Part shown: piece after piece, positions 36,401 to 63,699 of the stretch
Numbering within the stretch: the stretch's first letter is position 1
Layout of the letters: each line of letters begins with the position of its first letter
Source: Monocercomonoides exilis PA203
Lineage: Eukaryota; Protista; Preaxostyla
Direction of reading: 5' to 3'
Assembly (NCBI GenBank): GCA_001643675.2
Contig: LSRY02000011.1
Location: 620,001 to 684,000, forward strand
DNA length: 64,000 nt
Notes under the pieces: model-generated
What the model was told of the DNA's origin: nothing
The model's database searches: none
Seen by the model: the letters and a program-made list of their open reading frames with translations, nothing else
Program-made: the position numbers and the translations under genes

Positions 36401-39400
36401 GATAGATGAGGATGATTTCGAGTAGATCCATTGGCGTTAAAGAGTGCTCAGCTTTGTCTATCCCAAAAATCGCATTCAGGTGGACAAACACGCTCGAATC
36501 GAAGTTCATTTTAAACATTGTTTCGTTCACTTGAGTGTTCAGATTGTTGCACTCGATAAACATGTCGCGTCCAACAGATGCAGCGTTTGATTCGAACTTC
36601 AGCGGCTCAATCAGGATTTGGAGTTTGGCCTGCAGCTCAGTTCGTAAATAAATGCCTCCTCCTCTTCCATTGATTGTTGAACATCCACACATCTGGACAA
36701 TGCATTCCTTCAGGTTGAACAAACCATCTTCACACAGCTCAAAAAATACACATCCTCCCTTTCTGTTTTCCATTGCTTGACAACCAGAAAAAGTGCATTT
36801 TATCAAATCCACCTCGGAGCCTGTTGAATCAATGCAACTTAGAGTTCGCCCTCCATCACTTCTTCCATCAACAGAATAGAACACTGAGTTGTTGATGCAT
36901 ATTTGTTTATCATTCTCATTTCCCCATTCTGCGACTGATGGAATCATATTTATCAGGCTTCCATCGGTCACATTAATGGATTGGAGGCGTGTGTTATTGA
37001 TGCTCACATCAACTTTGTTGCTGACTTCGATCATGCTTCTTCCGATGTTGATTGAGTTGACATCAAAATCTCGAATAAGCAAGCAACCATGAAGGATGTT
37101 CACAAACATCGCACGAAGTGGACTTGTGCGTGGAGCAAGTGAATTAAGTGAACAAGATGCGATTGCCAGGAATCCGTCTCTGCAAGTTATTAATGCCTGG
37201 TTCAAGCATGAAAAGTTGGCTGTGGTTGAAAACTGAATAAAATTGAATGAAACATCATTTTTCACTTCAAGCATGATATTTTTTGTGGGGACGTCATTCT
37301 CAAATGTCATCACACTCTTTGCGGGTTCATCATCTTCAGCAGAAGACGATTCAACTGCAATGTCTGAAAATAAACACATATCTGTGACTGTGCATGCTGC
37401 AACAATTCCTATTTTCGGTTCAGAAGCATTGCTGCTAATTTGTTCCAAGCCTTTCCAAAAAGTTTTGCATGGATCGTCCATGCTTCCGCATCTCATAACA
37501 TCATGTCCATTATTCGACACAAATATCATTGTGCTCTCATATTTGACAAGAAATCGGAAGAGATCAGTGTGCAAAAATGTTTGATCATCTCCAACAAATA
37601 GTGAGCCATCCGACGCCATCTGCTCATATTCAAATGCAAATGATTTGTTTGTGACAGTGGAGTTCAAATCTTGGCATGTTAAAAATACGTTTTTTCCAAA
37701 TTCTGCTTTGTTATCTCTGAACGAGGGATCTGTTATTGTGAATGCTGAATCGTTTCCTTCCACATCAAGAAAAATTCCACCACCTTTTCCGTTATTTGCC
37801 TCTCCATGCTGCGACCATGGTGCGCTGCATAAAACAAAGCTGCACCCTGTAAGTTTTAAAGTGCAATCATTGCCAATTTTTCCATAAACTCCGCCCCCTC
37901 CTCCATTTGGCTCTGATTCCACTTTACACTCATTAAAAGAGCAATTGTTCACAGCTACAGTTATGATTGCTCCATTTTCTCTCGTAATGCACAAGCATGT
38001 TCCACTATTTGTTGTTCGGGTTACTGATGAAAAGTTGCTGTCGATCATATTTATGGATTTTCCATTTTTGCAAAATACAACGCTGCAATCATTATCTTCA
38101 AATGATGAAAAGTTCACATTTTTGATTGTTAAAGATCCTTTTTTTGACACAGAAATCAACCCTTCATTTGAACCAGAAGATATTTGGCTCATGTTCAAAA
38201 AGTCCAACAAGCCTTTGGTGCCATCTCCACTGATACTTATGAACGGATTTTCTCCGAAAGATACACCAACAATTTCAAATTGTGAGACATTCAACATTCC
38301 ACCAAGTGCGCAGCAAAAACAATAGCTCAAGACATCATCTGTGGAGGATGGAACTGCACCACACATAAGAATGGTCAGCATATTTTCTGTGCAACAGAGA
38401 AGAGGCTTGCAAAGAGGAAGTGAAGATGGAAGAGAGAACGTGATGTTTGTGAACGTTGTGTTTATCCTTGTTTCCAAATATCCATTCACAGGCGATGATG
38501 AGTCCCCAACAATTTTAATGGTTGTTCCCCTTGTGGATGCTGAAAACTCGAAATCAAAGCCTTCAAGCACTGCTGCTTCTTCAAACTGAAACGGAGGAAC
38601 TATGCAAATCTTTCTTGTGGAAGAATCAAAATGAGTGCTGATAGCATATTGCAATGTGGAGCATGGAGACACAGCAAACCCACACATGATATGGTCTGTT
38701 CCTGTTGATCCACTCACCGACACAACAGATGGGAAAGGCTTCCAGAGAAGCACCAATGGAATTGCAGCACCAATTTCGTTTTCGTCAAATCCCATCAGCT
38801 CATCCAGCACACTGTCATTTGTCTGAATTGCAAACTTCGTTTCAACACACAGCTCAGCAAAATCTGAGCCAACAACAAACACACTCTTTCCGTATTCAGC
38901 CTGGTTTCCTGAAAATGTTGTTTGAGAGAACTGGAACATCTTCCCACCGCCAGTGCAATCAATCATAACTCCACCTCCTACTCCTCTTTCGCTCAGACCC
39001 TTTCCTGCGCTACATTGTTGAAAGGTTGTCTCAATTCCATTTACAAGATCTTGACCTATTTCCAGTTTGCTTTCATCATTCATCTTCACCATAAGAGCAC
39101 CACCATTTCCGTCCTGGCATGTGCAGTGAGTGACATTGCATTCAGTGAAGCTCAATTTCTCTCCTGTACCAAGAATGGCTTCTATCAAGGAGCCATTTCC
39201 AGATCTTCGCTCAATCCCAGTGAATGAAGATTGTGTGAAGTTGGTGCATTTTGTGGAAATCATTGAAACAACAGGCTTTCCGTTCATGGATAGATGAGTA
39301 AATGAGCAACAAACAACGTTCATCATTCCCCCATGCAAATCAATGACGGGCTGGGTGAATTGCTGTGTTTGTTCATTTTCCTCACTTCTCAGCTCGCAAT

Positions 39401-41321: not shown

Positions 41322-41704
41322 TTGATGAAAATAAAATGATTGAAAGCGTCTTAGAAAGAAAGAAAAAGAAAAGATTAGAATATTTGTTATTAAAACTGTA
41401 ATCATGGGATGGATCAATGCATGGATATTATTCAAAATCAAACAAAGAGATTGAAATAATAAAGAATTATTATCAAAAAATGTTAGATGATATTTCCTTG
41501 ATCGATATCCATTTCTTGACAAAATTACGAGCATTCTTCCTTCACAACAAAAAAGTTTTTGTTGATGATTTACAGAAATTTCAATAATCAAAGTTTCAAT
41601 CGCGTTATATTTTAATTGAATTATTATTAAAGTTGACGTGTTATCAAATAATAAACGCAATTGTTATTTTTATTTTATTTTATTTTTTATTTTTTATTTA
41701 TTCA

Positions 41705-44609: not shown

Positions 44610-47600
44610 ATGTCTGAAACAACTTTGGTTACTGCAAAAGAAACATTGAAAGGAAAAGTTCTTCATGTTCGAACAGAATCAGAAGATGAAAAAGGAGTGG
44701 ATATGGAATATGTACTTCCTTATCTGAGCTCAATTGGAAAAGTTTCTTATTGCGTTATTATGCCGCGAATGAGACAGGCTTTAATTGAGATGGAAACAGC
44801 TGAGCAAGCTCAGAAAGTTGTGGACGAAACAAAAGGCCAATGCTTAAACATACAAGGGAAACTATTTTTTTTCCAACGTTCAAAGAATCCAGCTATAAAT
44901 AGAGAACCACCGTACAGAAAAAGTTTGCAGCAATATTGATGTATTTGCTTGAAATAAATCATGATATTAAAAATTTGTAACTTTTTATTCTTGAAATTTC
45001 CAAAATGATTTTCAGCAATAATACCACATTCAGGTGAAAAAATACTTCTTTGCACAGTTCATAATCCTCTGTTTCCAATAACTGTTAAAGTTATTGAAGC
45101 AATAATGTCTCCTTTTCATATAATTCGCACCGTGTTGTTTTATACAAATGGAATTCAATTCCTTGCTGAATTTTCTTGTCCAGAAGATGCCTTCACAGCA
45201 AGAGAGGCCCTTGATGGAAGAGAGATTTATCGCGGATGCTGCCTCTTGAAGATCGTTTATTCCAAAGAAACAGGCTCTTTAAAAGTTAAGTTTAACACAG
45301 CATCAACTTATGATTGGTCAAAGCCGTACCTTCCAACAGGTCCATGAGATGAACTTGAAGTGTAACCGAAAATATTTAAGTTTTTCACAATTGATCAATA
45401 CCAAAAGTAAATCATGATATGCTCCAGTCATGTGCCCAAGAGTTTGCCGCAACGTTTCCCAGCAATTGTTTGTGCCATGTTCACCTTTTTTGTATATTAA
45501 ATGGATGCATTATCAATTAATATTCAATATTTTTATACTTTTCACTTTTTGATGAAATTACAAAAAGATCGATTAAATCGAGTTCTTCATCACGATCATG
45601 AAGAAAGCATATTTGTTGTTTGTAATGATATAACAAAAAAGTTTTACTACATGAAAAAGAAATTGAAGAAAACTTTTGGAATACCAACGTTACAGCAAAA
45701 ACTGTGGAAATTTGAAATTGATTTGTTTTCAAGAGTTAAATCACTTTTCGTTGTAGAAATCGTCGATTTTTTTGATGACAATCTTTTTTATTATATTGTT
45801 TTCACATTTTGTGAAAGAGGAACCATCAAGCAATATATCGAAAGATCCATCACAGAAAGAAAACGCATTAGAGAAAATGTTTGTTATTTTTTGAATGGTA
45901 ACATTTTGTGTGATGGATATTAATTTTTCGATCACAAAATTAAAGGTAATATGGCAAGTTGGTTCAGAGATTGTTGCTGGGCTTGAATCATTACATTCAC
46001 TAGGAATCATTCACCGAAATATTAAACCAGAAAATATTTATATAACTAAAGAAAAACTATGTAAGATAGGTTTGCAGCTCATAATTTTTGATTTATTCGA
46101 CAAACTTCAAAAAATTTGATGGTGAACAATGATTGATCCTTTTTTTTCAATCTCCTTCATTTCAGGTACTCTAGGAAGCGAATCGCTTTTGCTAGAATTA
46201 ACATCAAATCCATGTGCGACTGTTTCGTCTTTAAAATATTTAGCTCCTGAAGTTCTTAACCGAAAGATGTTTGCCAACAATTCTTATCAATATATTAATA
46301 TTTTTTAACATTTTCATGATAAATGCCACTTTTAATCTGATCGCCAACAGAATAACAGGAGCTTCAGATATGTTTTCGCTCGGATGCATCTTGTTTGAAA
46401 TGATGACATTTCAGCTTCCATTCGAGACAGGCGATCTCATCGAGCCAGGCTCCCCTCTCTCTGAGAAGTTCGGACGATCTTCTGCCCATTTTGCCCAGCC
46501 AAGAATAAGAACTGCATCAATCCCCGAGGGATATTCAGACGAGCTAAAGAAAGTGATATATCGCTTGCTGTCGTTGGTGTGTTGAGACGTATATCTTTTT
46601 CTTTTCCTTTTGAGGTTATTTGATGATTCATGTATTTTCTCAAATTCACACAAAAATCAAAATTAATTCAATCTATATCATTAACACGAAATTACTATAT
46701 TTCTTTATTTTCTCTTCTCTCTCATAAACATGTTCTCACTCATCAACTCCATCAACAAAACCCAAACACTGCTGCAGGACCCAAACAGCCGCCCAACGCC
46801 GAATGAGCTGCTGCAGCACCCGCGAATGAAGGCTGAGCTGTCCCACACGCTTGCGCGCATCAAAGAAGCCAAGCTTCCATCTCACAGCGACTCCTCTGCC
46901 ACAGCCTCGCTCCCAATCACACCGTCTTTCACCCCGTTCACGTTTTCCTCGTCTGTTGCATCGCTTTCGAGCAACGAACGAGGAGACGAGGAAGTCAGAA
47001 GCACAAGCATTTCACAGTCTCCTGCTTCGTTTAGCTCGTCTTTCGTACGCTCTTCTGAGCCTTTTCCTCTTCTTCCTGCAAAGTCCAACGCATTCGCAAA
47101 GGATAAGACAGCAGAGTTTGCTGCGATGCAATCTGCATCTTTGCCAAATCAAAGACAAACTCCAACTTTAACCCCAACCTCTTCTTCTGGCAGTCAGACA
47201 AGCCCACTTTCACCTGGTTTACACATATCAACATTTGCTTCCTCTCCAAGTAGCTCTGCTTTTGATTCTAATTCTTCCACCTTTCAGCCTTTGAATTCTC
47301 TCAATTCTTCTGATTCAGCATCTTCGAACCAAGTCCCTTCGAGCAGCAATGCTTCTTCTCGTCTTCAGCACCCATCTTCAACTGGCACTTTAAATGCTGC
47401 TGCTGATTCCTCATTGTCTCCTCATTCAAATGAACTTACCAAACAAACTCTGGTTGCAAAAGAAGCAACTCCCTTTTCGTCTCTGCAGACTCAAACAACC
47501 AGAACAACAACGCCATTGAATTCACTGTCAACACCACCAAGAGACTCATCATCATCATCATCATCATCATCTTCTTCTTCTTCTTCTCCGTCTTCGTCTT

Positions 47601-50600
47601 CATCTTCGTCTTCATCTTCCTCTTCCTCTTGCTCTTCATCTTCGTCTTCATCACAGATTGGAAATTTGCTTAAGACATTCCGAGCACTCTTCCCACAGAA
47701 AGACAATAGCAATGGTGATGCACAGTCAGATGGGAAAGAGGAAGAAGGAGAACAGGAACAAAAGATGGTTTTAGATGTGGATGAGGACGAAGACCAAGAA
47801 AATGCAATGCAAAGCGATGAAACTGAGGCAGATTCTGATACAAACACCGAAGCAGACGCGGAAGATGGAATAAACAACAACAGCAGCAGCAATGACTCAC
47901 GCACCAACACTTATTTTTCTGCATCGATGCAACTTCTGTTTGCGATCCGGCAGCATTTGGACGACAGCATTCAGCTGACGACGCTTCCAGAGGCTTTAGA
48001 TATTTACTGCAAACAGTTGAAGACTGCATCGAAGGAAGAGAAGAGGAAATTACTCGGTAAAGAGACAGTGGATCTGCTGGTGCCATTTCTTGAGCTATCG
48101 AAAAAGAGTGACGGAGAAGAAGGAGGAGAAAATGGTGTTGAAAGGGAAAGAGAAGCAAATTCAACAGAAGAAGAAGAAGATGATGATGATGAAGAGAACA
48201 ACATTAAATGTCTTTGCCTCATTTTTGATCTGTTGCAGTGCGGACTTCTCGACGATGCTGAACACACCGCAGCTGTTTGCTCTCCTTCGCTCATTTCAAA
48301 TCTGCTTAGCTTTTTGGATGTGAATAACAGTTCCATCATCACACCACTTATTCTTGCAGTTGCTCGTTTTTGCTCCTGCGAGAATGAAGAAGTCATCAGC
48401 ACTCTCATCGACAACCAGATTCTTTCCAGGCTGTTGCATTCATCAGACATGCAGCACTCGTTTGCTTCCCGCATTGCCGCTGTCAGTTTCTACAGTGTGT
48501 GCTTATTTCGCCTTGGGACAGAATTAGGGAGAAGCGGAGACAACACAATGCACCCAGATTATTTGCCACTCAAAGAAAGTGGTCTGCTCGAAAGGATTGT
48601 CAAACTCCTCACCGACTCATTTGCACACGAGTCAGAAACCAGACGCTACTTCGGCCAGTCGCTCTTCCTCCTCTGCATCAACAGCCCAATCGACAAATCT
48701 TTCCTTCCTGTTCTGCAGTTTGCGAAGGAGTTTGTGGAAAACGAGGCTCGTCCTGTGAAGCACCGGCTGGAGACGCTTGTGTGTCTTTCTCTCCTCACCC
48801 GCCGCCCAGAAAACTATCGCATTTTGACTGAGTGTGGCATCCACCAGCTTTGTGCTGAGCTTATTAATAGGCAGAAGGAGGAGCTGTTCTTTGCCAGTCT
48901 GCGGATGCTCGTGGACTTTGTGCTGGTTGGCGATGGTCTGAGCAGAGAGGCTGTCAGAAGGTGTGTTGATGTATCGTCGGTGGAGTATTTGTCGCATTCG
49001 CCAGGCAGACATTGCTCTTTTGCTGCGAGCTGCCTGCAAGAACTGCTCGGCTTCCCCTTTTTGATGCTCTCAGAATGCGAAAAACTGATCAAGTCTTTGA
49101 AGAATTTCATTCCACAGACGAAGAGTCCAAGCTCTGCTGTTTCAAGTGATATTCTTCTGTCGCACATTCCGCTTGTCCGTGTGATATCTGGACATTATTT
49201 GGCAGAAAAGCCATTAATGGCAGCATTATCAACAATAACCGCCTCTGAGATTTCACCATCCTCCTCTTCCTCTTCCTCTTCCTCCTTATCAACAACATCA
49301 TCATCCATATCATCATCCTTTTACTCCTCATTTTCCTCCTCATTTTCTTCTTCTCCTTCTCTTTCTCTTTCCACAACTCTTATTTACCCTATTTCGGCAA
49401 AAGCGCCTCTATCAGCTTCTTCTTCGTCTTTATCAGCTTCGTCTTCATCTTTATCCTCGTCTTTCTCTGCATCCACAACGCCAAACAACACAAAAAAACA
49501 CTCCGTTTTTATGCTTCCATTTTTCCAGTCAGAAGATGTCCAGACATCTTTGGACACTCCTTGGTCTTCAATGTGGCCACACAGTGCTCCAACATCTTCT
49601 CCTGCAGGACAAACAAAAGCATCCTCAGATTTAATGCCATTATCACCTATTTCATCTGCAAATGCCACCAAACCCCAATCTTCCATTCTCCAAGCTGCTC
49701 CGATCCAAATCCCCGATTCGTCCATCGCGGCTGTGAAGCGTGGCTTTGAAGTTCTTGTTTCTGTTGTGCAGTGCTCATCGCAGAGTGTCAAAGAAGACAT
49801 CTGTACACGCAGCACATTCGTCTCCTTTGCCCGCATTCTCCGTGAATGTCCTCTCCGAACACCTCTTTTTGCACGCGATGGCGTGTGCCGCATGATCCAC
49901 CTGACTCTCTCAAACAACTCAGAATACTTACTCTCTGTCAACACACCTGACCTCGACCGCTATCTTGTTCGAACTATTTCTCTGTCTGCCACGCTTCTCA
50001 ATGCAGAGCACGTGAGGGCATTTCTGTGTTTGACTCAGGTGAGCAACGAAGACATAGCAAATTCGCTTGTGAGATTGGGGTGTTATACTCCGCTTTCGAG
50101 GCACATTGACTCAGATGACATTGAAATAGCTGTGCTTTCACTGAGATCTTTCTGCTCTGTTGTTGTTGAGCGCAACAAAAGTGTGGTGCTGTGGGATGCA
50201 TTTGTGGAGGATTTGAAGCAATTTGCCAAACAAAACAGCTCAAATGAGAAAGCTTCTAAGAGAAACATTTTGGATATTTATCATTCTGACATGGATTATG
50301 CTCAATATGTGAATATGAAAGTGCAGAAAAAGCGAGAAAATTTGAATGAAGAGAACGGGACGAGTCCACAAACAGTCTTACAAGAGGAGCTAAACAAGCT
50401 GCACAAGCGAATAAGGAAGGAGCGCGAGCAAATGATGGAGTATTTTCTGAAGTTGGAGCATCCAGACTTGACAGTTGTCAATGGGCTGAATTGCTACAAC
50501 TCGATTTTGAAGATATTCAAGAAGCTGTCGCTGTTATATCCAGCACAGCCAGATTCTAGTGGGCAAGCTACTCTGCAGTCTTCAATGAACAGCAAGGGAA

Positions 50601-53600
50601 CAACTGTCACGAAACCATCTGAGTCTTCTTCTTCTATTTCTTCTGCGTCTGCTTCATCATCATCATCATCTTTTCTTGTCCCATCCGAATCAATCTACGA
50701 TGATCCTCTTCTTCTTCTCATCTCCCACACCATTCTCTCTCTCCACTCAGGCCGTGCTTTCCCTCCTTCTCTCACACAAATCCTGCAATTTGCTGTTTCC
50801 TATTCGATCGCCCAGAAAGACAGTCATTCCCGCGACACCGTCGCAATCGTGCACATTCTGGTCTCGTTCACCTGCCTTCCTCAGAATCATTCTCTTCTGT
50901 TGAACTCTCACTGTAGTCAGCTGTGTGATGCACTCCTCGTGTCAGCTGATGCGCAGAAGCGGTCGTCTGCGCTGTTGATGCTTGTTGTGCTGTTCAGATG
51001 TGGAGACAGGAGCATTCGCGAAGAGCTGAGAAAGAGCATTTCTGTGGTGAATATGCAAAAGGCTGCTTCTCAGCCATCTGCTCTCGAAGGAGATCGAACA
51101 GATGCATCAGTTCTGATGGAGTTGTGGTCGTACAGCCCAAAGCTGCTGGATGCATTCAGCGATTTCATTCAGATCGTGAAAGGGTCGCTGTCAAATGTGC
51201 ATGACGAAAATTCACTTTCGTTTTGTGTTGCGAATCCTTCATTAATTCCAATTATTCGCAGCGCTTCTATTTCTCAATCATTGTCTGGTTCTTACTCAAT
51301 GTCAATGTCAGCTTCTGCTTCATCTTCTGCTTCTTCCTCTGCTTTATCATCGACTGCAAATTCAAATTCTTCTTTGGCTTCTTCTTCTGCTTCAATTAGA
51401 TCAGATAATAATTCTTCTTTGTCGTCTTCATCTCGAGAAATGACTTACCCGGTGCCATCTCTTCAAGGCGTATCTTCTTTGTTCTCTCTTTCTCTTCCAC
51501 TTTCATTGGTCTCTGAATCTTCCATCCTTTTCATGGAGCACATTCTTGTTGTTCTAAAATCAACTCTTTTGACTTCTCCAATAGAAACTATCAGAAACAT
51601 CATGAATGCCAATGTATTCCGTCAATTTGCTGCCATTCTGAAGGAATGTGACAGTACACATCATTGCTTCATCAGAGACAGCATCTGCGAATTAATAACG
51701 GAAGCACTGAGAGAAGACAAGCAGCAAACAGCTGAAGTGTGCACAACTGAACTTGTTCACTCATTGGTCGTCATTTTGAGGATGAATGATGAACTTGTCA
51801 GGCCTTGCTTTGTGGAAGCTGTAAAATCAATAACTTCACATCAAATAGAGTCACTCTGCACTTCCTTTGCCAAAGAAGACGTATTTTCTATTCTTATTCG
51901 TCTTTTCAGTCATCCAAATGAAATAGTCGCTGCTGAAGTCTGCTTTGTGCTTGATTCGCTGCTTCGCGCTCGGCGCAATAAAACAAACCGGACAATTCCT
52001 CCTGTTGATTACGACACTGTTGCCAAGAAGCTCCGAGGAAACAAGAAAATCCCCGAAGTATTCAATCATTTTCAATCGCAGTCACAAGAAGACAGCGGAG
52101 AAATCGAATGTAGACTCCTCACACCTCAGCTGTCTCTGTGCATTTCGTATTTGCTGCTTATGAGAAACGTCGAGCTGCAGGCTGATTCCGAGCCTCTTCT
52201 GTTGCATGCGATCCAATTTGCGGAAGCACATTTTGTGGAGGCTGAGTGGGATGAAGAAATAAGCATTTTGCTTGAAAGTCTTCTGGAGCTTGCTGAAAAT
52301 CCTGGTTTGAATTTAAATAACTTTTTAGCTTTTTTTTAATCCTATATTTTTCTTTCTTTCTTTGTGATATTTTTTTACTTAGCAAACTTCCCTCTCCTTT
52401 TCAAATGTGGGCTGCAAAATCTCAGCATAGCATTGGTACTCAGTTGTCAAACAGGCAAAAAGCATGTTGGCGTATTGCTTCTGACACAGCTAATTCAAAG
52501 CAGCTCAGGAGAATTGCGTGAAGAAGTGATGAAGTGCATAAATGATAACAACGCGGAAGGAAATGTTGAAACGGATAAGTTTGTGGCAAAACTGAATTTC
52601 ATTCCACGCGATGCAAGTGAACAGTATCGAGATGATGTGGATTCTTTGGTGCAACTTATTTGTTTGCCTCAAGAAATGCTCAGCTCTCTTGATCCGCTTA
52701 TCAAACTGATCACTCCTCATCTTCCTTCCATTAGCACTTTATTTAACACTGTGTATAAAACATATTCACATATTTTTCAGAACTCTTCTGTAAAAATGAC
52801 AAAATCTGTATGGTCATTTCTCTCAACTGCCTCACATGAGAAATCTGAAGATGGATCTCAGCCAGTCGAATTATCAAGCCAACCAAGTTCTCAATCTACA
52901 TCAGGAAATGCTGAAGCCAATAGAGACAGCGCACAAAACACCAATTCAGTGAATTCAAACGGAGAAAACAGTCAGAATTCAGACAGAGCTTTCTCAGCCA
53001 ATTCCATTAGCTCTCAAGAAGATGGATCCAACCAGCCTTCATCATCATCATCCTCTTCCTCCTCCTCTTCTTCTCAACAGCAATCAGAATTTGACTTGGA
53101 CAATGTGAATCGTCCGTTTTGCTTCCCTCCCCGTTTCCCGTCACAGATCCCCACAACTTCAATCGAATACATCCGCTCTGCTCTTCTCTGCTTTTGCCAT
53201 ATTCTTTCCACAGCCGAACAGCCTACAAAAAGAAAGCTTGCCTCCAAGCAACTGTTCGATCTCTTTCCAGACATTCTCCAAAGCTGCCAAAACAACCCGC
53301 TTTCATTTGCGCGCGAAGACATCTGCTTTGTCATCCAGAATTCTCTTGAGAATGATCTTTCCCATCTCTTGTCTGTCTTCTCTCCTCCACTCGCAAGTTC
53401 TCTTATCGGACTTCTCACCTACGAGCCTGAGCTTCCCTCTTTGAGCGTCTTGCGATCTTTGCATATCTTTGCATCGTGCAAAGACAAAGACGTTATTTCC
53501 TCTCTTGTTGATGACAAATGCTATCCTACTCTTGTTTCTCTGTTGTCTCGCTGTCCTGTGAAGAGCTCTGCTCAATCAACTTCAGCTGCTTTTGCGTCTC

Positions 53601-56600
53601 TGTGTGTTTCTTGTGTCTATCACATGGTTCGCTCAAGATGCAACCCAGATCCTCTTTCGGAGCATGTGGATATCGAGGAATTCTCCGAAAACGAACTTAT
53701 TTCTCCGATTTTTGAAAAGTTTACTGAGTGTAGCGATGAAAGTGAAAGAGGAAGAGGGAAAGGAAGAGGGAGAGAAGACGAAGAACAAAACAAAACAAAG
53801 GAAGAGTTGAAGCAAAGAATATGTTTTATTATTCTTGCTTTGTATGAAAATCAACCTTTTCCAGAAGAATACAAAAAAGTGCTTGCATTTTGCTGTGCTT
53901 TTGTATCAGACCAAACGCAAAAAACGGAAAGTAGATTAGATTTATTGACAGCTCTGACGAATATGGCAACGCACGATGGTTTGTCTGGTTCTTGTCTTTC
54001 ATAATTATTATTATTTATAATTGTTTTTCTTTCTTTCTTAATTAATTAATTTTCAATTGTAATATTTGCTGTATTTTATCCTTTTTTGAAATACTTTCTT
54101 GTTTTTTTTCCTTCAGAAAACCACAAACTTCTCATGGACTGCTCAATTGGCAAAACGCTGAACAATCTCCTGTCTGAATCCAACGAGGACATGATATCGC
54201 TTTCACTTGTCATTCTGCGCTATCTCATCGGCCAAAGCACAAGAGAAGTGCGCGAATCTGTTGCCTCTTCCATCTCAGCCGAAAGAATTGGCAAACTTGT
54301 CAATAACAGCCAGCCTTCGTCTGCTGAGTTGCTGTCTTCCTCTGCCGATGCTGATGTCTTGATGGAGATGCTGAAGATACCTCAGCCTCTTCTCAGAGCT
54401 TGCGAACCGCTTGTTGCACAAATAAATGCGTTTTTCATAAAAATCGATACGAAAAAAACAGTTCCGTTGAAGAAAACATCCAAAAGCAAGATATTATCGC
54501 AAACTTTTGCTTCTCCTTCCCCTTCTTCTTCTTCGTCTTCTGCATCAGCATCAGCATCTTCATCTTCATCTTCCTCAAGCAGCTTCGCTTCGAAGCGCCC
54601 AAAACTCTCTCCATTATCAATCCCATTATCCAGCACGCAATTAATTTCCTCTCCCTCTTCTTCTTCTTCTTCTTCATTGCTATCTCCCACCTCGTCGCAT
54701 ACTCACTCTCCTCTTTCTCCTTCATCCTCTGAAGCACAACCTTCAGTTCTTTCACCAAAAGCTCCTTTCTCTCCTCATTCAACACAGTCAATTCATTCAC
54801 TTCACTCACTTCATTCACCTCACTCACCTTCTTCGCTTCATTCACCAACATTCCCTTCCACTCCAACATCTCAGTCAACTCAGTTCATTTCGTGGGGCCT
54901 ATCAACTTTCTCTTCCTTCCCTTCTTCTTCTTCTGCTTCTGCTTCTGCAAGTTCTTCATCCTCCTCCTCTTCTTCTTCCTCTTTCTCTTCTTCGACATTC
55001 TCCTCCTCTTTTGGTTTATCTGCTACTTTTGCTGCTGTTCCCACCACACAACCCTTGCCATCACCGTCTCGTTCCCACAATATTCCAGTTCCGCAGATGC
55101 CTGTTGCTCCTCCACACCCTCCTCTTCCAATGCCTTTTTCTTCGATCCTTCCTTCTTTTTCTATCTGTGGCATCCAGCAGACTATCTACGACTTCGCCTC
55201 GAAAATGCATAAGCAGACCATCCGGCCGAAGGAGAAGCTGAGTCTCAAGGAAGTGTTTGAGTTGTTTCCAGACGTTCTGGCGAGCTGCCCGCAGAACCAG
55301 CAGAACTTCTTCCGCGATGTTGTCTGCGTGTCTATCAGTTCAGTCATCGCCGGCGACTACTTCGTGACGAAAGTGCTGTACAAGCCAGCCTTGGGCAAAG
55401 CGCTCATCGATGTAACTTCACTGGACAAGTCAATTGTCACCATTCGCATCTTCAAAGCGATGGGGGTGCTTCTGTCGGTGACTTCGCCTGAGCCTGTTGT
55501 GGAGTCGATGGTTGAGCTTGGCTGCTTCCGCCCTCTTCTGGCGCTGCTGGAGCACACAGACGAGGAGGTGCGGATGGCGAGCAGCGAGTGTCTGAAGAGC
55601 ATTCTGTTGGGAAGACGAGGAAATGACGCTGCAGACAAGCCACACCAGGACGCAGCGGGCATTCAGTCGCTTGACGGATTTACTGCGATGGCGAAGGCAT
55701 TTGGAAATGTGCCGAAGGAAGGAAGCGCGCCATTCAAAGAGAATCTTGTGGTGTCTGCTCTTGTTGCACACAAGGTTTCCCCTTTGCCAGATGCGTTTGG
55801 CGGCTTTTTGGACATTGCGAAGAATATGGTGACGAACAAGCAGAATGGGATGGAAAATCGAAAGAGAATGTTAATTGCGCTGAAGTGGCTTTCGTGGCAT
55901 CCAAGTGTGTTATTCTTCTTTTGTTCATTTTCTCTTTCATTTTTCCAAAAATTGTCGAATGATATTTCATTTTCAATTCAACACATATTTTTAACGATTG
56001 CAAAATTTATTTGTTTATTTATTTGCTTGTTTAATTTTAATAACAGACAACATTCAAATCCTGAACCAGCACAACATACACAAACTTGCCATAGACATCA
56101 TCAACGGAGACGAAGAACCGTTCCATCTTCTTGCTGGCAACATTCTAACCTATTTGTATTCCCGCTCTGACCAAGAATTCCGCAAGTCATTCACTCCTCT
56201 TCTTCCCAGCGAGCGCATAAAGCAGCTGTCAGAGTCGCAAGCCAGCCAAATGCAGACAGAGATGGGGAATTTATACTGGCACCTGAAGACGCCAGAGGCG
56301 ACTTTCCGCGCCTGCGAAAAGCTTATCCAAATTGTTCTCACACGCATCCAGCCAGAGAAGTCGCAGGAGCTCCTGCCTCACACATCTGTAGAGTTCATCG
56401 AATCGCTCCTGTCGTCGTATGTCGAGAAGCTGAGTGCGCTCCAGGAGGACGCGAAGCTGCCTCTGCTGTCGGACGATCTTCTAGGCCAGATTCTGGATGT
56501 GTTTGACACGTGCCCGCCAGACGTGCGGGTGAAGGTTCGGAATCTTCTCTGTCTGCTGCAGCTGGAGTTCCTGTACAACGACAAGCGCACCACGGACTTC

Positions 56601-57474
56601 TGGTCTGAGCGGATGGCTGACGAGTGTGTGAAGATGCTGTCGATCTCGCAGGACGTGATCGAGACGATCCACGTCCGCGCCTGGAACTCGCTCACCGTCG
56701 GTGAGACGTCGCAAAGAACAACCATTTTGATCGAGAAGAAGATCCTGTCCCGTCTTGTTCCTTTGATTGCGAGCACAGACAAGGCCATGGTGTCTATCAC
56801 GACGCTGATCCTCTCCAACCTAATGGCGAGCGGGCAGAACCACCACCCGGTCAACAAACCGCATCCGTTCCGTGAGGAGCTGATGGCGCTGGACGCGTAC
56901 AAGATTTTGTTCAATCAGTACGAACAGTTCAAAGAAGTCTCGCGCATTGCAAGGAGAATTGTACAGTCAATATTTAGACTGTATCTTGCACTGCCACTTC
57001 CCTCTGAATGCAGCCAGATGGTTGTCTTCACCTCCAATTTCCTCGAAAACAAAGAAGAGCCCGACGCTTCAAAGTCATTTCTGGTGTCCGCTATTACTTC
57101 TCTCTTGTCTTGTGCAGGTTTGCCTCAGATTTTATTTTTTGACTTGAAAGTTTCTCGGAATTTTTTTTTCTTTGTTAATAAATAAAACGATATGCTTGTA
57201 ATATCTGTTTCAAATTTTATAATTAGAGAATCATGCGCTTATTTTGGATAATAATATCGATAAACTTGTTAGCAAGCTTTTGTCAATAAAGGACAAGACT
57301 GTGATGGATTTTCTCCATTTCTTTGCAGCGTTTATGAGAACTGGAAATGAGGCTACAAAAGCAAGGCTAAAGACTCTTTTCAAAAAAGAACAAATTATAA
57401 AGATAAGAGATGAGTTTGCAACAGATGAAGAAGTGAAAACTGCTGCAGACAACCTTTTAGAATTCTTACGCTGA
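44610..57474 (+). CDS. Predicted 12-exon, ~3,896-aa protein: two PTB/hnRNP-L-type RRMs + NEK-like pseudokinase + six ARM/HEAT-like super-repeats. Alternative: an RRM gene ending at 45347 and a kinase-ARM gene starting at ATG 45419
   Basis: Exons 44610-44922, 45016-45339, 45408-45467, 45568-45878, 45946-46069, 46166-46268, 46351-46576, 46778-52304, 52383-53978, 54117-55904, 56047-57117, 57227-57474. All introns are GT-AG with matching phases; total 11,691 nt. RRM1 KVLHVR..QALIEM. RRM2 ILLCTVHNPLFPITV..NGIQFLAEF..ALDGREIYRGCCLLKIVYSK. Kinase motifs IIHRNIKPENI, KIGTLG, YLAPE, SDMFSLGCILFEM, DPNSRPT. Confidence 0.7.
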
Positions 57475-58494: not shown

Positions 58495-61400
58495 TCACAT
58501 CCACTTTGGTAGCTCAGAATTAACGTTGTTTAACCAATAGTTTGCCATTGTTCTTCCTTCATTATCGGCCAATGTGGAACTGTGTCTCATCCATTCTGGC
58601 GGCTCTGTCTTCACATATTTTATCCACAGCATGGCCATTGTTGCCCCATCATTATCGCTAAGAATATTATCGTGTCTCATCCACTCTGGTGGCTCCGTCT
58701 GGACATATTTTATCCAGAGCATCGCCATTGTTGTTCCATTCTTATCGCAAAGTGAAATTTCATGTCTCATCCACTCTGGTGGCTCGGTTTTGATATATTC
58801 AATCCACAGCATGGCCATCGTCATTCCTCTTTTATTGACAATAATATTGCTATGTCTCATAAATGCCGGCGGCTCTGTATTGATATGAAAAATCCAGTGA
58901 ATGGCCATCGTTGCTCCATTCTTATCGCTTTGAGAAATACTATGTCTCATCCACTCTGGTGGTGACTTTTTGACATATTCAATCCACAACATGGCCATTG
59001 TTAATCCATCTTCATTTCCAAGTGCATTATCGTGTCTCATCCATTTTGGTGGCTCTGTCTTTATATTTGCGATCCAATACATCGCCATTGTTGCTCCATC
59101 ACTATTTTGGAGTACATATTCGTGTCTCATCCATTCTGGTGGCTCTGTCAGGACATATTTTATCCAGAGCATGGCCATTGTTCTTCCATTATTATCGCAA
59201 ATTGTAATATTGTGTCTCATCCATTCTGGCGGCTCTGTTTTGACGTTTGCTATCCAATACATCGCCATTGTGCATCCATCATAATCGCCAAGTGTGATTT
59301 CATGCCTCATCCATTCACGTGGTTCTGTCTTTGTACTTGTGATCCAATGCATGGCTATGGACAATCCTTTCTTGTCGCGATATGAAATGCCATACCTCAT
59401 ATGCTCAGGTGGTTCTGTTTTTTTCTCCATAATCCAGCGCATTGCTCCAATTCTTCCATTGCTATCGGGGGAATTATCACATTTCATCCATTCTGGTAAA
59501 TCAGTTTGAATATTTTCAATCCAATACATCGCCATTGTCCATCCATTTTCATCTGCAAAAGAAATATTATGTCTCATCCATTCTGGTGGAGCTGTTTGAA
59601 CATATTCGATCCACAGCATGGCCATTGTTTTTCCGTTATCATCAGTGCGCGCAATGTCATGTCTCATCCATTCTGGTGGAGCTGTCTGGATATTTGTAAT
59701 CCAACACATCGCCATTGTTCTTCCATCCTTTTCTCCAAGTGTGATCTCATGTCTCATCCATTCTGGTGGAGCTGTCTGTACATATTCGATCCACAGCATG
59801 GCCATTGTTCTTCCATCATCATCAGTGCGCGCAATGTTATGTCTCATCCATTCTGGTGGAGCTGTCTGTACATATTCGATCCACAGCATGGCCATTGTAC
59901 ATCCATCTTCATCCGTAAGTGCACTATCGTGTCTCATCCATTCTGGTGGAGCTTCCTGTAAACAGTCAATCCATAGCATGGCCATTGTTCTTCCGATCTC
60001 ATTGGCTAATATGATGCTGTGCCTCATCCATTCTGGTGGATTTGTCTTCACATATTCGATCCACAGCATGGCCATTGTTGCTCCATATTCATCGGTAAGT
60101 GTAGTGCTATGTCTCATCCATTTTGGTGGCTCTGTCTTCACATATTTTATCCACAGCATGGCCATTGTTCTTCCGTATTTATCGGCTAATATGATGCTGT
60201 GCCTCATCCATTTAGGTGGCTCTGTTTTGACTTTTGAAATCCAATACATTGCCATTGTTTGTCTTTTTGAACCTCCTGTAATTGCTATATCATGTTTCAA
60301 ACTGTCCGGGGGATCTGTTTTATTAAGTTTAATCCAGTTCATTGCTTCAGTTCTTCCATTAACGTTTGCTAATAATTTGTCAGGCTTCATCCATTCAGGT
60401 ACAGCAGCGTCAACAAAATCGCTCCAATATTTTGCCATTGTTCTTCCATATTCATCGGTAAGTGTAATGCTATGTCTCATCCATTCTGGTGGCGCTGTTT
60501 GAACATATTCGATCCATAACATTGCCATTGTTTTTTTATTATAATCACCATGAATCTTATCGTGTCTCATCCATTCTGGTGGCTCTGTCTTTATATTTTC
60601 AATCCAATGCATGGCCATTGTCCATCCATTATTATCGCAAAGCGTAATGCCATGTCTCATCCATTCTGGTGGATTTGTCTTCACATATTCGATCCACAGC
60701 ATGACCATTGTTGCTCCATCGTGATCGCAAAGTGTAGTGCTATGTCTCATCCATTTTGGTGGCTCTGTCTTCACATATTTTATCCACAGCATGGCCATTG
60801 TTCTTCCGTATTTATCGGCTAATATGATGCTGTGCCTCATCCATTTAGGTGGTTCTTTTTGAATATTTTCAATGTAATACATGGCCACTGTTCTTCCCTC
60901 TTCATCGGCAAGCGAAATATCATGTTTCAAACTGTCCGGGGGATCTGTTTTATTAAGTTTAATCCAGTTCATTGCTTCAGTTCTTCCATTAACGTTTGCT
61001 AATAATTTGTCAGGCTTCATCCATTCAGGTACAGCAGAGTCAACAAAATCGCTCCAATATTCTGCCATTGTTGCTCCATCGTGATCGCAAAACGTAATAT
61101 CGTGTCTCATCCATTCTGGTGGCTCTGTATTAGCATGTATGATCCAATACATTGCCATTGTTAATCCATCTTCATTTCCAAGTGCACTATCGTGTCTCAT
61201 CCATTCTGGTGGCTCTGTCATGACAGATTCGATCCATAGCATGGCCATTGTTGCTCCATCGTGATCGCAAAGCGTAATGCCATGTCTCATCCATTCTGGT
61301 GGCTCTGTCTTCACATATTCGATCCACAGCATGGCCATTGTTGCTCCATATTCATCGGTAAGTGTAGTGCTATGTCTCATCCATTTTGGTGGCTCTGTCT

Positions 61401-63465
61401 TCACATATTTTATCCACAGCATGGCCATTGTTCTTCCGTATTTATCGGCTAATATGATGCTGTGCCTCATCCATTTAGGTGGTTCTTTTTGAATATTTTC
61501 AATGTAATACATGGCCACTGTTCTTCCCTCTTCATCGGCAAGCGAAATATCATGTTTCAAACTGTCCGGGGGATCTGTTTTATTAAGTTTAATCCAGTTC
61601 ATTGCTTCAGTTCTTCCATTAACGTTTGCTAATAATTTGTCAGGCTTCATCCATTCAGGTACAGCAGCGTCAACAAAATCGCTCCAATATTTTGCCATTG
61701 TTCTTCCATATTCATCGGTAAGTGTAATGCAATGTATCATCCATTCTGGTGGCTCTGTCTTCACATATTTTATCCACAGCATGGCCATTGTTGCCCCATC
61801 ATTATCGCTAAGAATATTATCGTGTCTCATCCACTCTGGTGGCTCCGTCTGGACATATTTTATCCAGAGCATCGCCATTGTTGTTCCATTCTTATCGCAA
61901 AGTGAAATTTCATGTCTCATCCACTCTGGTGGCTCGGTTTTGATATATTCAATCCACAGCATGGCCATCGTCATTCCTCTTTTATTGACAATAATATTGC
62001 TATGTCTCATAAATGCCGGCGGCTCTGTATTGATATGAAAAATCCAGTGAATGGCCATCGTTGCTCCATTCTTATCGCTTTGAGAAATACTATGTCTCAT
62101 CCACTCTGGTGGTGACTTTTTGACATATTCAATCCACAACATGGCCATTGTTAATCCATCTTCATTTCCAAGTGCATTATCGTGTCTCATCCATTTTGGT
62201 GGCTCTGTCTTTATATTTGCGATCCAATACATCGCCATTGTTGCTCCATCACTATTTTGGAGTACATATTCGTGTCTCATCCATTCTGGTGGCTCTGTCA
62301 GGACATATTTTATCCAGAGCATGGCCATTGTTCTTCCATTATTATCGCAAATTGTAATATTGTGTCTCATCCATTCTGGCGGCTCTGTTTTGACGTTTGC
62401 TATCCAATACATCGCCATTGTGCATCCATCATAATCGCCAAGTGTGATTTCATGCCTCATCCATTCACGTGGTTCTGTCTTTGTACTTGTGATCCAATGC
62501 ATGGCTATGGACAATCCTTTCTTGTCGCGATATGAAATGCCATACCTCATATGCTCAGGTGGTTCTGTTTTTTTCTCCATAATCCAGCGCATTGCTCCAA
62601 TTCTTCCATTGCTATCGGGGGAATTATCACATTTCATCCATTCTGGTAAATCAGTTTGAATATTTTCAATCCAATACATCGCCATTGTCCATCCATTTTC
62701 ATCTGCAAAAGAAATATTATGTCTCATCCATTCTGGTGGAGCTGTTTGAACATATTCGATCCACAGCATGGCCATTGTTTTTCCGTTATCATCAGTGCGC
62801 GCAATGTCATGTCTCATCCATTCGGGTGGTTCTTTCTTCACATATCGAATCCATAACATGGCCATTGTCCATCCATCCTTACCAGCAAGCGTTATTCCGT
62901 GTCTCATCCATTCTGGTGGCTCTGTATTAGCATATATGATCCAATACATGGCCATTGTCCATCCGTCCTTATCAGCAAGTGTGATGTCATGTCTCATCCA
63001 TTTCGGCGGTTCCGTCTTTTCACTTATAATCCAATACATTGCCATTGTTATCCCATTCTTACTGCCAAGTGTGATGTCATGTCTCATCCACTCTGGTGGA
63101 TCCGTCTGGACATATTTTATCCACAGCATGGCCATTGTTCTTCCTTTCTTATCGCAAAGTGCAATGTCATGTCTCATCCATTCGAGTGGCTCTTTTTGAA
63201 TATTTTCAATATAATACATGGCCACTGTTCTTCCATCATTGTCTGCAATAGAAATTTTATGTCTCATCCATTCAGGTGGCTCAGTTTTACTTTTCTCTAT
63301 CCAACGCATAGCTTTTGTTTTTCCCTCTGTATCTTGATAAGCATTTATATTATCAAAAATGCTTGCCATTTTGCGAGAGGAAGATCTATAAAATTCGCTT
63401 GTTGTTCGGTAAAAGTTTTTCCAGAAGGATGATCGATCAATGATTTCCCATTTTTTAGTTTCCAT
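58495..63465 (-). CDS. Intronless 1,656-aa tandem-repeat protein: 54 copies of a 30-aa ankyrin-like unit, consensus DxxGxTMAMxWIxxxxTEPPEWMRHxxxxx
   Basis: Uninterrupted ORF with a 90-nt DNA period. A 44-aa leader, 50 units of 30 aa, 2 of 29 aa, 1 of 31 aa and a 23-aa last unit sum to 1,656 aa. DxxGxT followed by a hydrophobic helix resembles the ankyrin hairpin and helix 1. Confidence 0.9.
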   Translation of the reverse strand: METKKWEIIDRSSFWKNFYRTTSEFYRSSSRKMASIFDNINAYQDTEGKTKAMRWIEKSKTEPPEWMRHKISIADNDGRTVAMYYIENIQKEPLEWMRHDIALCDKKGRTMAMLWIKYVQTDPPEWMRHDITLGSKNGITMAMYWIISEKTEPPKWMRHDITLADKDGWTMAMYWIIYANTEPPEWMRHGITLAGKDGWTMAMLWIRYVKKEPPEWMRHDIARTDDNGKTMAMLWIEYVQTAPPEWMRHNISFADENGWTMAMYWIENIQTDLPEWMKCDNSPDSNGRIGAMRWIMEKKTEPPEHMRYGISYRDKKGLSIAMHWITSTKTEPREWMRHEITLGDYDGCTMAMYWIANVKTEPPEWMRHNITICDNNGRTMAMLWIKYVLTEPPEWMRHEYVLQNSDGATMAMYWIANIKTEPPKWMRHDNALGNEDGLTMAMLWIEYVKKSPPEWMRHSISQSDKNGATMAIHWIFHINTEPPAFMRHSNIIVNKRGMTMAMLWIEYIKTEPPEWMRHEISLCDKNGTTMAMLWIKYVQTEPPEWMRHDNILSDNDGATMAMLWIKYVKTEPPEWMIHCITLTDEYGRTMAKYWSDFVDAAVPEWMKPDKLLANVNGRTEAMNWIKLNKTDPPDSLKHDISLADEEGRTVAMYYIENIQKEPPKWMRHSIILADKYGRTMAMLWIKYVKTEPPKWMRHSTTLTDEYGATMAMLWIEYVKTEPPEWMRHGITLCDHDGATMAMLWIESVMTEPPEWMRHDSALGNEDGLTMAMYWIIHANTEPPEWMRHDITFCDHDGATMAEYWSDFVDSAVPEWMKPDKLLANVNGRTEAMNWIKLNKTDPPDSLKHDISLADEEGRTVAMYYIENIQKEPPKWMRHSIILADKYGRTMAMLWIKYVKTEPPKWMRHSTTLCDHDGATMVMLWIEYVKTNPPEWMRHGITLCDNNGWTMAMHWIENIKTEPPEWMRHDKIHGDYNKKTMAMLWIEYVQTAPPEWMRHSITLTDEYGRTMAKYWSDFVDAAVPEWMKPDKLLANVNGRTEAMNWIKLNKTDPPDSLKHDIAITGGSKRQTMAMYWISKVKTEPPKWMRHSIILADKYGRTMAMLWIKYVKTEPPKWMRHSTTLTDEYGATMAMLWIEYVKTNPPEWMRHSIILANEIGRTMAMLWIDCLQEAPPEWMRHDSALTDEDGCTMAMLWIEYVQTAPPEWMRHNIARTDDDGRTMAMLWIEYVQTAPPEWMRHEITLGEKDGRTMAMCWITNIQTAPPEWMRHDIARTDDNGKTMAMLWIEYVQTAPPEWMRHNISFADENGWTMAMYWIENIQTDLPEWMKCDNSPDSNGRIGAMRWIMEKKTEPPEHMRYGISYRDKKGLSIAMHWITSTKTEPREWMRHEITLGDYDGCTMAMYWIANVKTEPPEWMRHNITICDNNGRTMAMLWIKYVLTEPPEWMRHEYVLQNSDGATMAMYWIANIKTEPPKWMRHDNALGNEDGLTMAMLWIEYVKKSPPEWMRHSISQSDKNGATMAIHWIFHINTEPPAFMRHSNIIVNKRGMTMAMLWIEYIKTEPPEWMRHEISLCDKNGTTMAMLWIKYVQTEPPEWMRHDNILSDNDGATMAMLWIKYVKTEPPEWMRHSSTLADNEGRTMANYWLNNVNSELPKWM
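58601..62823. repeat. Direct duplication of 1,073 bp inside the repeat gene (58601-59673 = 61751-62823, offset 3,150)
   Basis: The two blocks look identical by eye, and identical shadow ORFs recur at exactly +3150 (58762/61912, 58970/62120, 59032/62182, 59294/62444). Confidence 0.9.
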
Positions 63466-63699
63466 TTTTGAATCAATGATTTAAAAGTTCAATAATCAGA
63501 AATTATTCACAATTGTTTGTGTAAATGAACATCAACAAATCTCACACTCCGATATGTTCGTTTCAACTGAATTCATAATAGGAGTAAAGTTCGCAAAAAG
63601 GCAGTTGATTCTTTCAAAAAAATTTTTTCATTTTAATTTTTTTTTGATCAAATGAGTATAAAAGGCAAAAACAACATCCAAGTGCATGCAGCGAATTCA

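Follow-up and report, generated by a model that had tools for sequence, protein, structure and literature searches.

A predicted ankyrin-repeat variant, invisible to Pfam and greatly expanded in the oxymonad Monocercomonoides exilis

Introduction

Ankyrin (ANK) repeats act as binding scaffolds, and the classic repeat, with a period of about 33 residues, combines a TPLH or TALM motif in helix 1 with a second helix some 10 residues long. In designed ankyrin repeat proteins (DARPins), those positions that are randomised form a concave binding surface (PMC8229355). In the metamonad Giardia, the proteins of the 21.1 family have ANK-repeat and coiled-coil features and are thought to be cytoskeletal (PMC7743719). 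With it, a large set of pure ankyrin proteins tied to the cytoskeleton has a metamonad precedent. Ankyrin repeats are also combined with RING fingers in E3 ubiquitin ligases. Here, we describe a gene of the oxymonad Monocercomonoides exilis PA203 whose product is an array of 54 tandem units, most of them 30 residues long. The gene is located on the reverse strand at 58495-63465 of the window, which is the whole stretch of 64,000 nucleotides that was analysed (GenBank assembly GCA_001643675.2, contig LSRY02000011.1, positions 620,001 to 684,000; C5:620001-684000 in our contig numbering). We consider it quite likely that this is a genuine, probably transcribed oxymonad gene, that its 54 repeats are divergent repeats of the ankyrin type, and that its product is likely a protein-binding scaffold. 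The repeat is a variant of the ankyrin repeat that is invisible to Pfam and greatly expanded in one lineage, and the gene is among the largest multi-module members of its family. A search of the literature for the motif, and for Monocercomonoides together with ankyrin, gave no description of this repeat family. These results leave the general view that ankyrins serve as binding scaffolds as it was.

The gene and its repeat array

The open frame of the gene has 1661 amino acids (aa) and opens 5 codons upstream of the ATG. Tandem Repeats Finder reports an array with a period of 90 bp, 52.3 copies and 66% matches at 58583-63282. Parsing of the translation, for which the anchor G-x-T-x-A-M-x-W-I was used, gave 54 units, of which 50 have 30 aa, two have 29 aa and one has 31 aa, and the last one is truncated to 23 aa. 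There are 39 distinct units, and 15 of the 54 are recent duplicates. Outside the duplicated blocks, the median pairwise identity is 68% in a nucleotide unit-by-unit matrix. The heptapeptide PPEWMRH is found exactly in 28 of the 54 units, and the protein contains 6.3% Trp and 9.0% Met. The open frame, the repeat finder and the unit parsing bear out the array of 54 Trp/Met-rich units of 30 aa that a preliminary description of this DNA had proposed. The same description had the gene without intron and its product without catalytic domain; the open reading frame (ORF) is indeed uninterrupted, and Pfam finds no catalytic domain in the 1656-aa protein and no RING finger. No hydrophobic stretch is seen by eye at the N-terminus. 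Matches to YycE-like_C, RHH_5 and PRK11027 in Pfam/NCBIfam are sub-threshold and summed over the repeats, and we discarded them as artefacts. The repeat protein has no match in a sequence search of the PDB. A word-based homologue search with the full 1656-aa query was blank, which is uninformative given that this search was length-windowed and its collection lacked the proteins of the same genome.

Predicted fold

The segment of aa 1-344 was modelled with AlphaFold2 from an alignment of 105 in-register ten-unit windows taken from paralogs. The model has a mean predicted local distance difference test score (pLDDT) of 92 and a predicted template modelling score (pTM) of 0.80. Residues 11-41 form a long N-terminal helix; the pLDDT is 57 for aa 1-10 and 81-86 after that. 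Secondary structure assignment with DSSP gives each unit a 9-residue helix (positions 7-15) and, after P19-P20, a 3-residue helical turn (positions 21-23, E-W-M), together with extended segments. The units are stacked in a curved, L-shaped solenoid, in which the second helix is cut to one turn.

The top matches of this model in the PDB, searched with Foldseek, are all ankyrin-repeat structures, with a probability of 1.00 and E-values down to 1e-7. They include AnkB, ankyrin-1, Espin, DARPins, RNase L, latrotoxin and NOMPC. Alignment to AnkB and AnkR with VIA-align gave Z-scores of 17.7-18.9 and a root mean square deviation (rmsd) of 4.1-4.9 over 302-309 residues. Residues 30-344 of the model cover about 345 chain residues of AnkB/AnkR, and therefore ten 30-aa units align to ten 33-aa ANK repeats. 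The model also superposes on DARPins with an rmsd of 2.6-3.2. A fold search of the ESM Atlas returned ten ankyrin clusters with template modelling scores up to 0.73, and the neighbours in a language-model search were ankyrin clusters only. The listed fold matches contain no Sel1 or TPR structure and Pfam finds neither repeat in the protein, and a solenoid of the Sel1/TPR type was rejected.

The predicted fold is thus an ankyrin-type solenoid with its second helix largely lost. The likeness to ankyrins suggested by the preliminary description is supported by the model and by the fold searches, and its proposal that PPEWMRH takes the place of helix 2 agrees with the turn containing Pro-Pro that DSSP assigns. 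Measured against a classic ANK repeat, the unit has a period of 30 aa instead of about 33, the motif T-M-A-M-x-W-I instead of TPLH or TALM, and a 3-residue helix after P-P instead of a second helix of about 10 residues. In the proposed mechanism, the unit would keep the ankyrin β-hairpin and helix 1 (D1-x-x-G4-x-T6-M-A-M9-x-W-I), the second helix would have collapsed to a Pro-Pro turn and one helical turn (T-E-P-P-E-W-M-R-H), and Trp and Met would replace the usual Leu/Ala/Val core. Residues W11, W22, M7, M9 and M23 are those that stand where ankyrins have Ala, Leu or Val. The units would stack one-to-one as ankyrin repeats do, giving a curved solenoid.

Comparison with ankyrin sequences

None of the Pfam Ank families is listed when the full protein is scanned with hmmscan at E-values up to 1. 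A six-frame search of the genome with Ank_2 gave 34 matches, all of them away from this locus and from the paralog loci listed. The repeat is therefore not an ordinary Pfam Ank, as the preliminary description had expected. The same description went on to call it a distinct solenoid family, and this did not hold.

Since summed repeat scores can link unrelated solenoids, we ran a clean profile-profile test. We set 107 three-unit windows of the family against 18 three-repeat windows of the Pfam-verified ankyrin proteins P0091, P0142 and P0144 (relatives are numbered here as in our profile search). The alignment by hhalign to these TALM-type ankyrins is in register over 81 columns, with a probability of 96.6% and an E-value of 5.7e-10. 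It contains one 3-residue gap per unit, after E-W-M, so that the unit is indeed 3 aa shorter than an ankyrin repeat, as had been noticed earlier. In this register, unit positions 1-23 and 24-30 correspond to ankyrin positions 1-23 and 27-33, respectively. Alignments by hidden Markov model (HMM) place D-x-x-G-x-T-M-A-M-x-W-I on D-x-x-G-x-T-A-L-M-x-A-I in the same register. The homology to bona fide ankyrins obtained in this way carries two caveats, a null result with TPLH-type ankyrins and a match to the Sel1 protein P0127; both are weighed in the Discussion.

An exhaustive profile search of 1.84 billion representatives found 293 proteins at E <= 0.001 and 46 at E <= 1e-30. Short metagenomic proteins that share the W/M repeat of 29-31 aa gave the strongest matches. 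In six of them (P0001-P0004, P0006 and P0007), the W/M repeat is followed by a C-terminal RING finger. Two intermediates, P0008 and P0010, pass the gathering score of Pfam Ank_2. Long ankyrin proteins with the motif G-x-T-A-L-M (P0091, P0113, P0142, P0144 and P0151) are matched at E-values of 1e-12 to 1e-22. Two of these, P0113 and P0151, are Pfam-positive ankyrins with a period of 30-31 aa, their spacing alternating between 30 and 31, and the 30-aa period alone therefore does not disqualify the repeat as an ankyrin. The protein P0092 (3932 aa, 18 stretches) was set aside, its repeat being a different one of low complexity. The profile comparison, the Ank_2-positive intermediates, the 30-31-aa Pfam-positive ankyrins and the fold prediction point to a divergent offshoot of the TALM-type ankyrins and not to a separate solenoid family. 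With these ankyrins, the oxymonad repeat shares the predicted L-shaped solenoid of units stacked one-to-one and the signature D1, G4, T6 and M9. It differs from them in lacking a Pfam Ank score, in the invariant Pro-Pro in helix 2, of which one turn is left, and in having 3 fewer residues after the helix-2 region.

Framework, variable positions and selection

Statistics were made on 665 distinct units from 32 family genes. Positions G4, T6, A8, M9, W11, I12, P19, P20 and W22-H25 are 86-99% conserved. The Shannon entropy is below 0.7 bits at positions 6, 8, 9, 11, 12, 19, 20 and 22-25. It exceeds 3 bits at positions 3, 5, 10, 13, 14 and 30 only; position 2 has 2.6 bits, and positions 15-16 and 26-29 are moderately conserved, with a consensus of 56-78%. 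In the 1656-aa protein itself, the framework of G4, T6, A8-M9, W11-I12 and T17 to H25 is 81-97% conserved, with the exceptions of E18 (0.64) and E21 (0.78). The nearly invariant framework of the preliminary description is therefore largely right, with E18 and E21 weaker than claimed. Its list of variable positions has to be narrowed: 3, 5, 10, 13, 14 and 30 are retained, with 2 at a lower level, while 15-16 and 26-29 are dropped.

In the register of the alignments, the six hypervariable positions map to positions of the ankyrin and DARPin binding face, where the earlier description had put the variability. In DARPins, the library positions randomised by Binz et al. 2003 are reportedly 3, 5, 13, 14 and 33. 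The natural positions 3, 5, 13, 14 and 30 of the oxymonad unit correspond to these five, and position 10 is additional to the DARPin set. Judged from helical periodicity, positions 10, 13 and 14 would lie together on one side of helix 1 (i, i+3, i+4), with the conserved positions 8, 11, 12 and 15 on the opposite one. The variability is thus confined to hairpin and helix-1 positions that are presumed, from the register and the periodicity, to be exposed, and N- and C-terminal caps are present, which is a DARPin-like layout. Each module would carry its variable residues as a long strip along the ankyrin binding face.

Selection was estimated by Nei-Gojobori counts on disjoint nearest-neighbour pairs of units, 120 pairs at 85-98% identity and 227 pairs at 78-90%, with a synonymous divergence of 0.2-0.4. 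The overall ratio of nonsynonymous to synonymous substitution (dN/dS) is 0.28. Framework sites have 0.06, intermediate sites 0.33-0.35 and the six hypervariable sites 0.59-0.60. The highest values for single positions are 0.99-1.01, at positions 5, 14 and 30. The scaffold is under strong purifying selection, which marks the family members as functional coding genes. At the variable sites, evolution looks relaxed or neutral. No position has a dN/dS above 1 in either identity band, a result on paralogous pairs of units that is not conclusive as to positive selection.

These values bear on two other explanations. The first is that the repeat is a non-functional, satellite-like sequence that happens to be open, or else a solenoid of the Sel1/TPR type. 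It is reported that 45.97% of the M. exilis genome is annotated as repeats and that the class 'unclassified' makes 35.17% of the assembly (PMC8767320). Such a high share of mostly unclassified repeats would favour a satellite, and the match of the repeat profile to a Sel1 protein would favour the solenoid. However, framework codons with a dN/dS of 0.06 at this synonymous divergence, dozens of intact family ORFs of 350-1660 aa, and fold searches that give ankyrins and none of the Sel1 or TPR type largely refute this explanation, which is hardly credible. The second is a diversifying recognition repertoire, immune-like or for self/non-self recognition, whose variable face is positively selected to track bacterial or viral targets in the gut. 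A set of about 100 paralogs whose framework is fixed while six positions on the canonical binding face are hypervariable, the tandem and inverted duplicates that are clustered in the genome, the recent segmental duplication, and the rise of dN/dS from 0.06 in the framework to about 1.0 at positions 5, 14 and 30 would all fit it. However, a pooled value of 0.6 with no position above 1 is what is expected of neutral surface positions, and the paralogous pairs compared are subject to gene conversion. We regard such a repertoire as unlikely. The reprogrammable binding surface of the preliminary description, taken as one under selection, was not borne out by variable-site values of 0.6-1.0.

Modular organization and array length

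Internal copies were found by combining the unit-by-unit nucleotide identity matrix with a fixed-offset comparison. In addition to the 1073-bp duplication (Table 1), units 19-22 recur, partly diverged, as units 26-29 and 33-36, with exact stretches of 308 bp and 184 bp. Motifs that resemble caps, recognised by comparison with the termini of paralogs, are present within the protein at the unit boundaries 8|9, 19|20, 26|27, 33|34 and 43|44. The array can therefore be divided into six cap-to-cap modules, whose in-frame fusion has kept the 30-aa register. An AlphaFold2 model of aa 464-763, across the boundary 19|20, keeps the secondary structure of the repeat and has a pTM of 0.52, compared with 0.80 for the stretch that has no strong cap junction. 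Its pLDDT is 59 at the linker aa 604-613. The model suggests that the cap-to-cap linker is a probable hinge between rigid modules, each of which would then probably act as a solenoid of its own, with hinges in between. The gene would have been built by head-to-tail fusion of six such modules in frame, followed by a recent segmental duplication.

Table 1 Features of the repeat-protein gene in the window.
Feature	Position	Strand	Remarks
Repeat-protein gene, complete intronless ORF	58495..63465	-	1656 aa; starts with ATG and stops with TGA
N-terminal non-repeat segment, aa 1-44	63334..63465	-	Predicted long helix at aa 11-41, ahead of unit 1
Module 1, units 1-8 (aa 45-283)	62617..63333	-	Unit 1 N-cap-like; C-cap-like end '...LPEWMKCDNSP'
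Module 2, units 9-19 (aa 284-613)	61627..62616	-	N-cap-like 'GRIGAMRWIMEKKTEPP'; C-cap unit 19 'TMAKYWSDFVDAAVPEWMKPDKLLA'
Module 3, units 20-26 (aa 614-823)	60997..61626	-	308-bp exact repeat, 61360-61667 = 60730-61037
Module 4, units 27-33 (aa 824-1033)	60367..60996	-	Start and end nearly copy Module 3
Module 5, units 34-43 (aa 1034-1333)	59467..60366	-	
Module 6, units 44-54 (aa 1334-1656)	58498..59466	-	Terminal C-cap 'TMANYWLNNVNSELPKWM*'
1073-bp duplication, first copy, units 7-17	61751..62823	-	100% identical to second copy, offset 3150 nt
1073-bp duplication, second copy, units 42-52	58601..59673	-	Seen in the unit identity matrix and at fixed offset
C-cap/N-cap linker, aa 604-613 'EWMKPDKLLA'	61627..61656	-	Lowest-confidence stretch of the AlphaFold2 junction model

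The length of 54 units could have been inflated by mis-assembly of near-identical blocks, the real gene being shorter. The M. exilis assembly is based on Oxford Nanopore reads and was polished (PMC8767320), which favours this explanation, as do the complete identity of the 1073-bp block in units 7-17 and 42-52 and the exact 308-bp and 184-bp blocks that recur among modules 2 to 5. However, the duplicate copies differ in their flanks, the reading frame is intact throughout the array, and both junctions of the 1073-bp duplication are present in independent contigs from short-read RNA libraries. Moreover, a second family ORF on contig C48, which is only about 60% identical, also has 1660 aa. An inflated length seems distinctly unlikely to us.

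The short-read data come from four RNA-seq runs of one study, all of which contain the unique 5' region of the gene. RNA-library contigs cover 63144-63475 (332 nt) with no mismatch, and 63134-63324 and several internal stretches are matched exactly. In three of the four runs, no RNA depth is left upstream of about 63475. At 62824, 62831, 62834 and 62838, the contigs carry variant letters that are the bases flanking the second copy of the 1073-bp duplication, while the base of the first copy is carried by a minority of the depth at each of these positions. Both flank variants are thus found in the depth, and therefore both duplication junctions are present in the short-read data. The gene is likely transcribed.

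The gene family

The genome searched has 82,301,135 bp in 101 contigs. A six-frame search with ten units gave at least 265 matching stretches. They fall into more than 60 distinct open frames, 350-1660 aa long, which are spread over about 30 contigs. A degenerate DNA pattern for P-P-E-W-M-R-H has 1159 sites genome-wide, compared with 0 for the reversed control. With the exact heptapeptide present in about half of the units, these sites imply about 2,300 units and, from sequence counts, a family of roughly 90-100 genes.

We examined 31 paralogous frames. They consist solely of these repeats with a short N-terminus and a cap at each end. The N-terminal cap unit reads G-R-T-x-A-M-R-W-I-x-E-K-K-T-E-P-P, and the C-terminal cap has the form T-M-A-x-Y-W ... 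P-E-W-M-K, followed by the stop codon. A Pfam scan of nine paralogs found no additional domain, no RING and no Ank. About a third of the paralogs (L004, L009, L011, L012, L019, L028, L029 and L031) begin with M-G-N, a start that may allow some family members to be N-myristoylated and anchored to membranes; the protein of the window begins with M-E-T-K and does not have it.

The family appears to be lineage-specific and would have evolved by birth-and-death and tandem duplication. On contig C80 (1.96 Mb), about two dozen family ORFs are clustered in what looks like a hotspot of birth-and-death. This contig contains an inverted pair of near-identical 859-aa genes; examples of the clustered ORFs are 91847-93346 (+) and 100997-102496 (-). 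In-frame TGA codons are found inside the matches at L008 (C80:524657-528337), C2:1673913-1674377 and C55:49395-49892, and each of these copies is likely either a pseudogene or a set of adjacent genes. At L008, there is also an internal C-cap/N-cap junction that resembles those of the gene in the window.

Discussion

The hypervariable positions are located where ankyrins and DARPins contact their ligands, and binding is therefore the most likely function. By this analogy, the protein would be a non-catalytic cytosolic scaffold or adaptor with many different patches. The framework, the few variable surface positions and the capping repeats are features that the family has in common with DARPins. 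It differs from them in being natural, with a 30-aa unit and up to 54 units, compared with the designed 33-aa unit in 2-3 internal repeats. Furthermore, no evidence of selection for binding is found in the oxymonad family (dN/dS <= 1), unlike in DARPins. The Giardia 21.1 family is alike, by description, in being a large lineage-specific radiation in a metamonad. However, its members are described as recognisable ANK proteins (PMC7743719), whereas the oxymonad repeat escapes Pfam Ank.

Several points weigh against a binding scaffold of ankyrin-type repeats. The protein gets no score from the Pfam Ank models, and hhalign against nine canonical ankyrin segments of the same genome, of the T-P-L-H/T-A-L-H type, was insignificant. 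A bacterial Sel1-repeat/trypsin protein, P0127, also matches the repeat profile at an E-value of 1e-16. This match rests on a fortuitous periodic pattern, G-x-T-x-A-M ... E-P-E-x-A-R-x-W, and summed repeat E-values are therefore inflated and untrustworthy alone. The structure is a predicted one, and the exposure of the variable residues was deduced from the register and the helical periodicity. The function as a binding scaffold rests on the analogy with ankyrins, and variable-site values of dN/dS that never exceed 1 fit a plain relaxed constraint on the surface. Lastly, the exact 1073-bp duplicate could partly be an effect of the Nanopore assembly, and the evidence for RNA comes from contigs assembled from the reads of a single study, where carry-over of DNA is possible.

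The closest relatives outside this genome, at 33-38% identity, are the RING-fused proteins of other, uncultured eukaryotes, in which the same 29-30-aa W/M repeat precedes a C-terminal RING. They suggest that the repeat can be the substrate-recognition arm of E3 ubiquitin ligases; here, it stands alone. The ANK domain of MIB1, an ankyrin-RING protein, is among the structural matches of the model. The protein of the window and its nine scanned paralogs differ from the ankyrin-RING ligases in having neither a RING nor any other domain. In a metagenomic contig of 2777 bp from the Joint Genome Institute (L033), a second, separate RING-finger gene is located ahead of P0001 on the same strand.

A broader proposal may be formulated. 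The PPEWMRH repeat would be a compact ankyrin-derived binder scaffold with one full helix per unit, used for a diversified intracellular repertoire in oxymonads and some uncultured eukaryotes. It would serve in ubiquitin-ligase adaptors, fused to RING elsewhere and acting in trans here, or in innate defence or surveillance, and the multi-module giants would be polyvalent adaptors. On present evidence, we think this proposal unlikely.

About 2,300 units, about 0.2 Mb of coding DNA and about 100 genes have been invisible to Pfam in a model amitochondriate eukaryote. The genes of the family probably lie among the 'unclassified repeats' of the genome. Recognition of the repeat as an ankyrin derivative fills this gap in the annotation, and the profile also detects the RING-fused relatives in metagenomes. 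The family can be viewed as a natural experiment on the ankyrin scaffold, in which helix 2 would have become a Pro-Pro turn and the core Trp and Met, with the geometry and DARPin-like variable positions kept. The layout of six modules linked by hinges suggests that giant repeat proteins may grow by fusion of capped genes and then by segmental duplication.

Origin and genomic surroundings

The preliminary description had also considered that the gene could be derived from a virus or have been acquired horizontally, in which case a giant-virus or phage ankyrin would be its source. The best neighbour in the language-model search, a cluster of ankyrins whose labels are mostly viral (score 0.90), is in line with such a source, and the relative P0011 is located on a contig of same-strand ORFs, none of which has a Pfam match. 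However, a scan of IMG/VR found no relative, and no viral hallmark genes are present in the window. The relative P0008 lies among ordinary eukaryotic genes, namely DFRP, Rce1, NifU, EF-hand and an RNA polymerase subunit. The GC content of the gene (0.39-0.41) resembles that of the coding DNA around it, and the paralogs are dispersed over about 30 contigs. The blank IMG/VR scan, the eukaryotic context of P0008 and this dispersal leave a viral or horizontal origin unsupported, and we consider it very improbable.

Several other ORFs of the window are large, and two of them, one with a SCAI domain and one with a C-terminal kinase fragment, are of eukaryotic type. Regions 19310-22195 (-), 25940-33214 (+) and 46730-57185 (+) contain ORFs of 961, 2424, 1869, 546, 694 and 395 aa, which have no Pfam family except for a weak HEAT match. 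At 33477-41660 (-), there is an ORF of 2727 aa whose sole Pfam match is a C-terminal kinase fragment, PK_Tyr_Ser-Thr, at aa 2592-2686. An expanded tyrosine-kinase family that overlaps the 'unclassified repeats' was reported with the M. exilis assembly (PMC8767320), and this ORF probably belongs to it. The ORF at 5318-16777 (+) has 3819 aa and an N-terminal SCAI domain (E-value 5e-28). It is located in a GC-rich block (0.49-0.55) that is flanked by AT-rich DNA (0.24-0.34).

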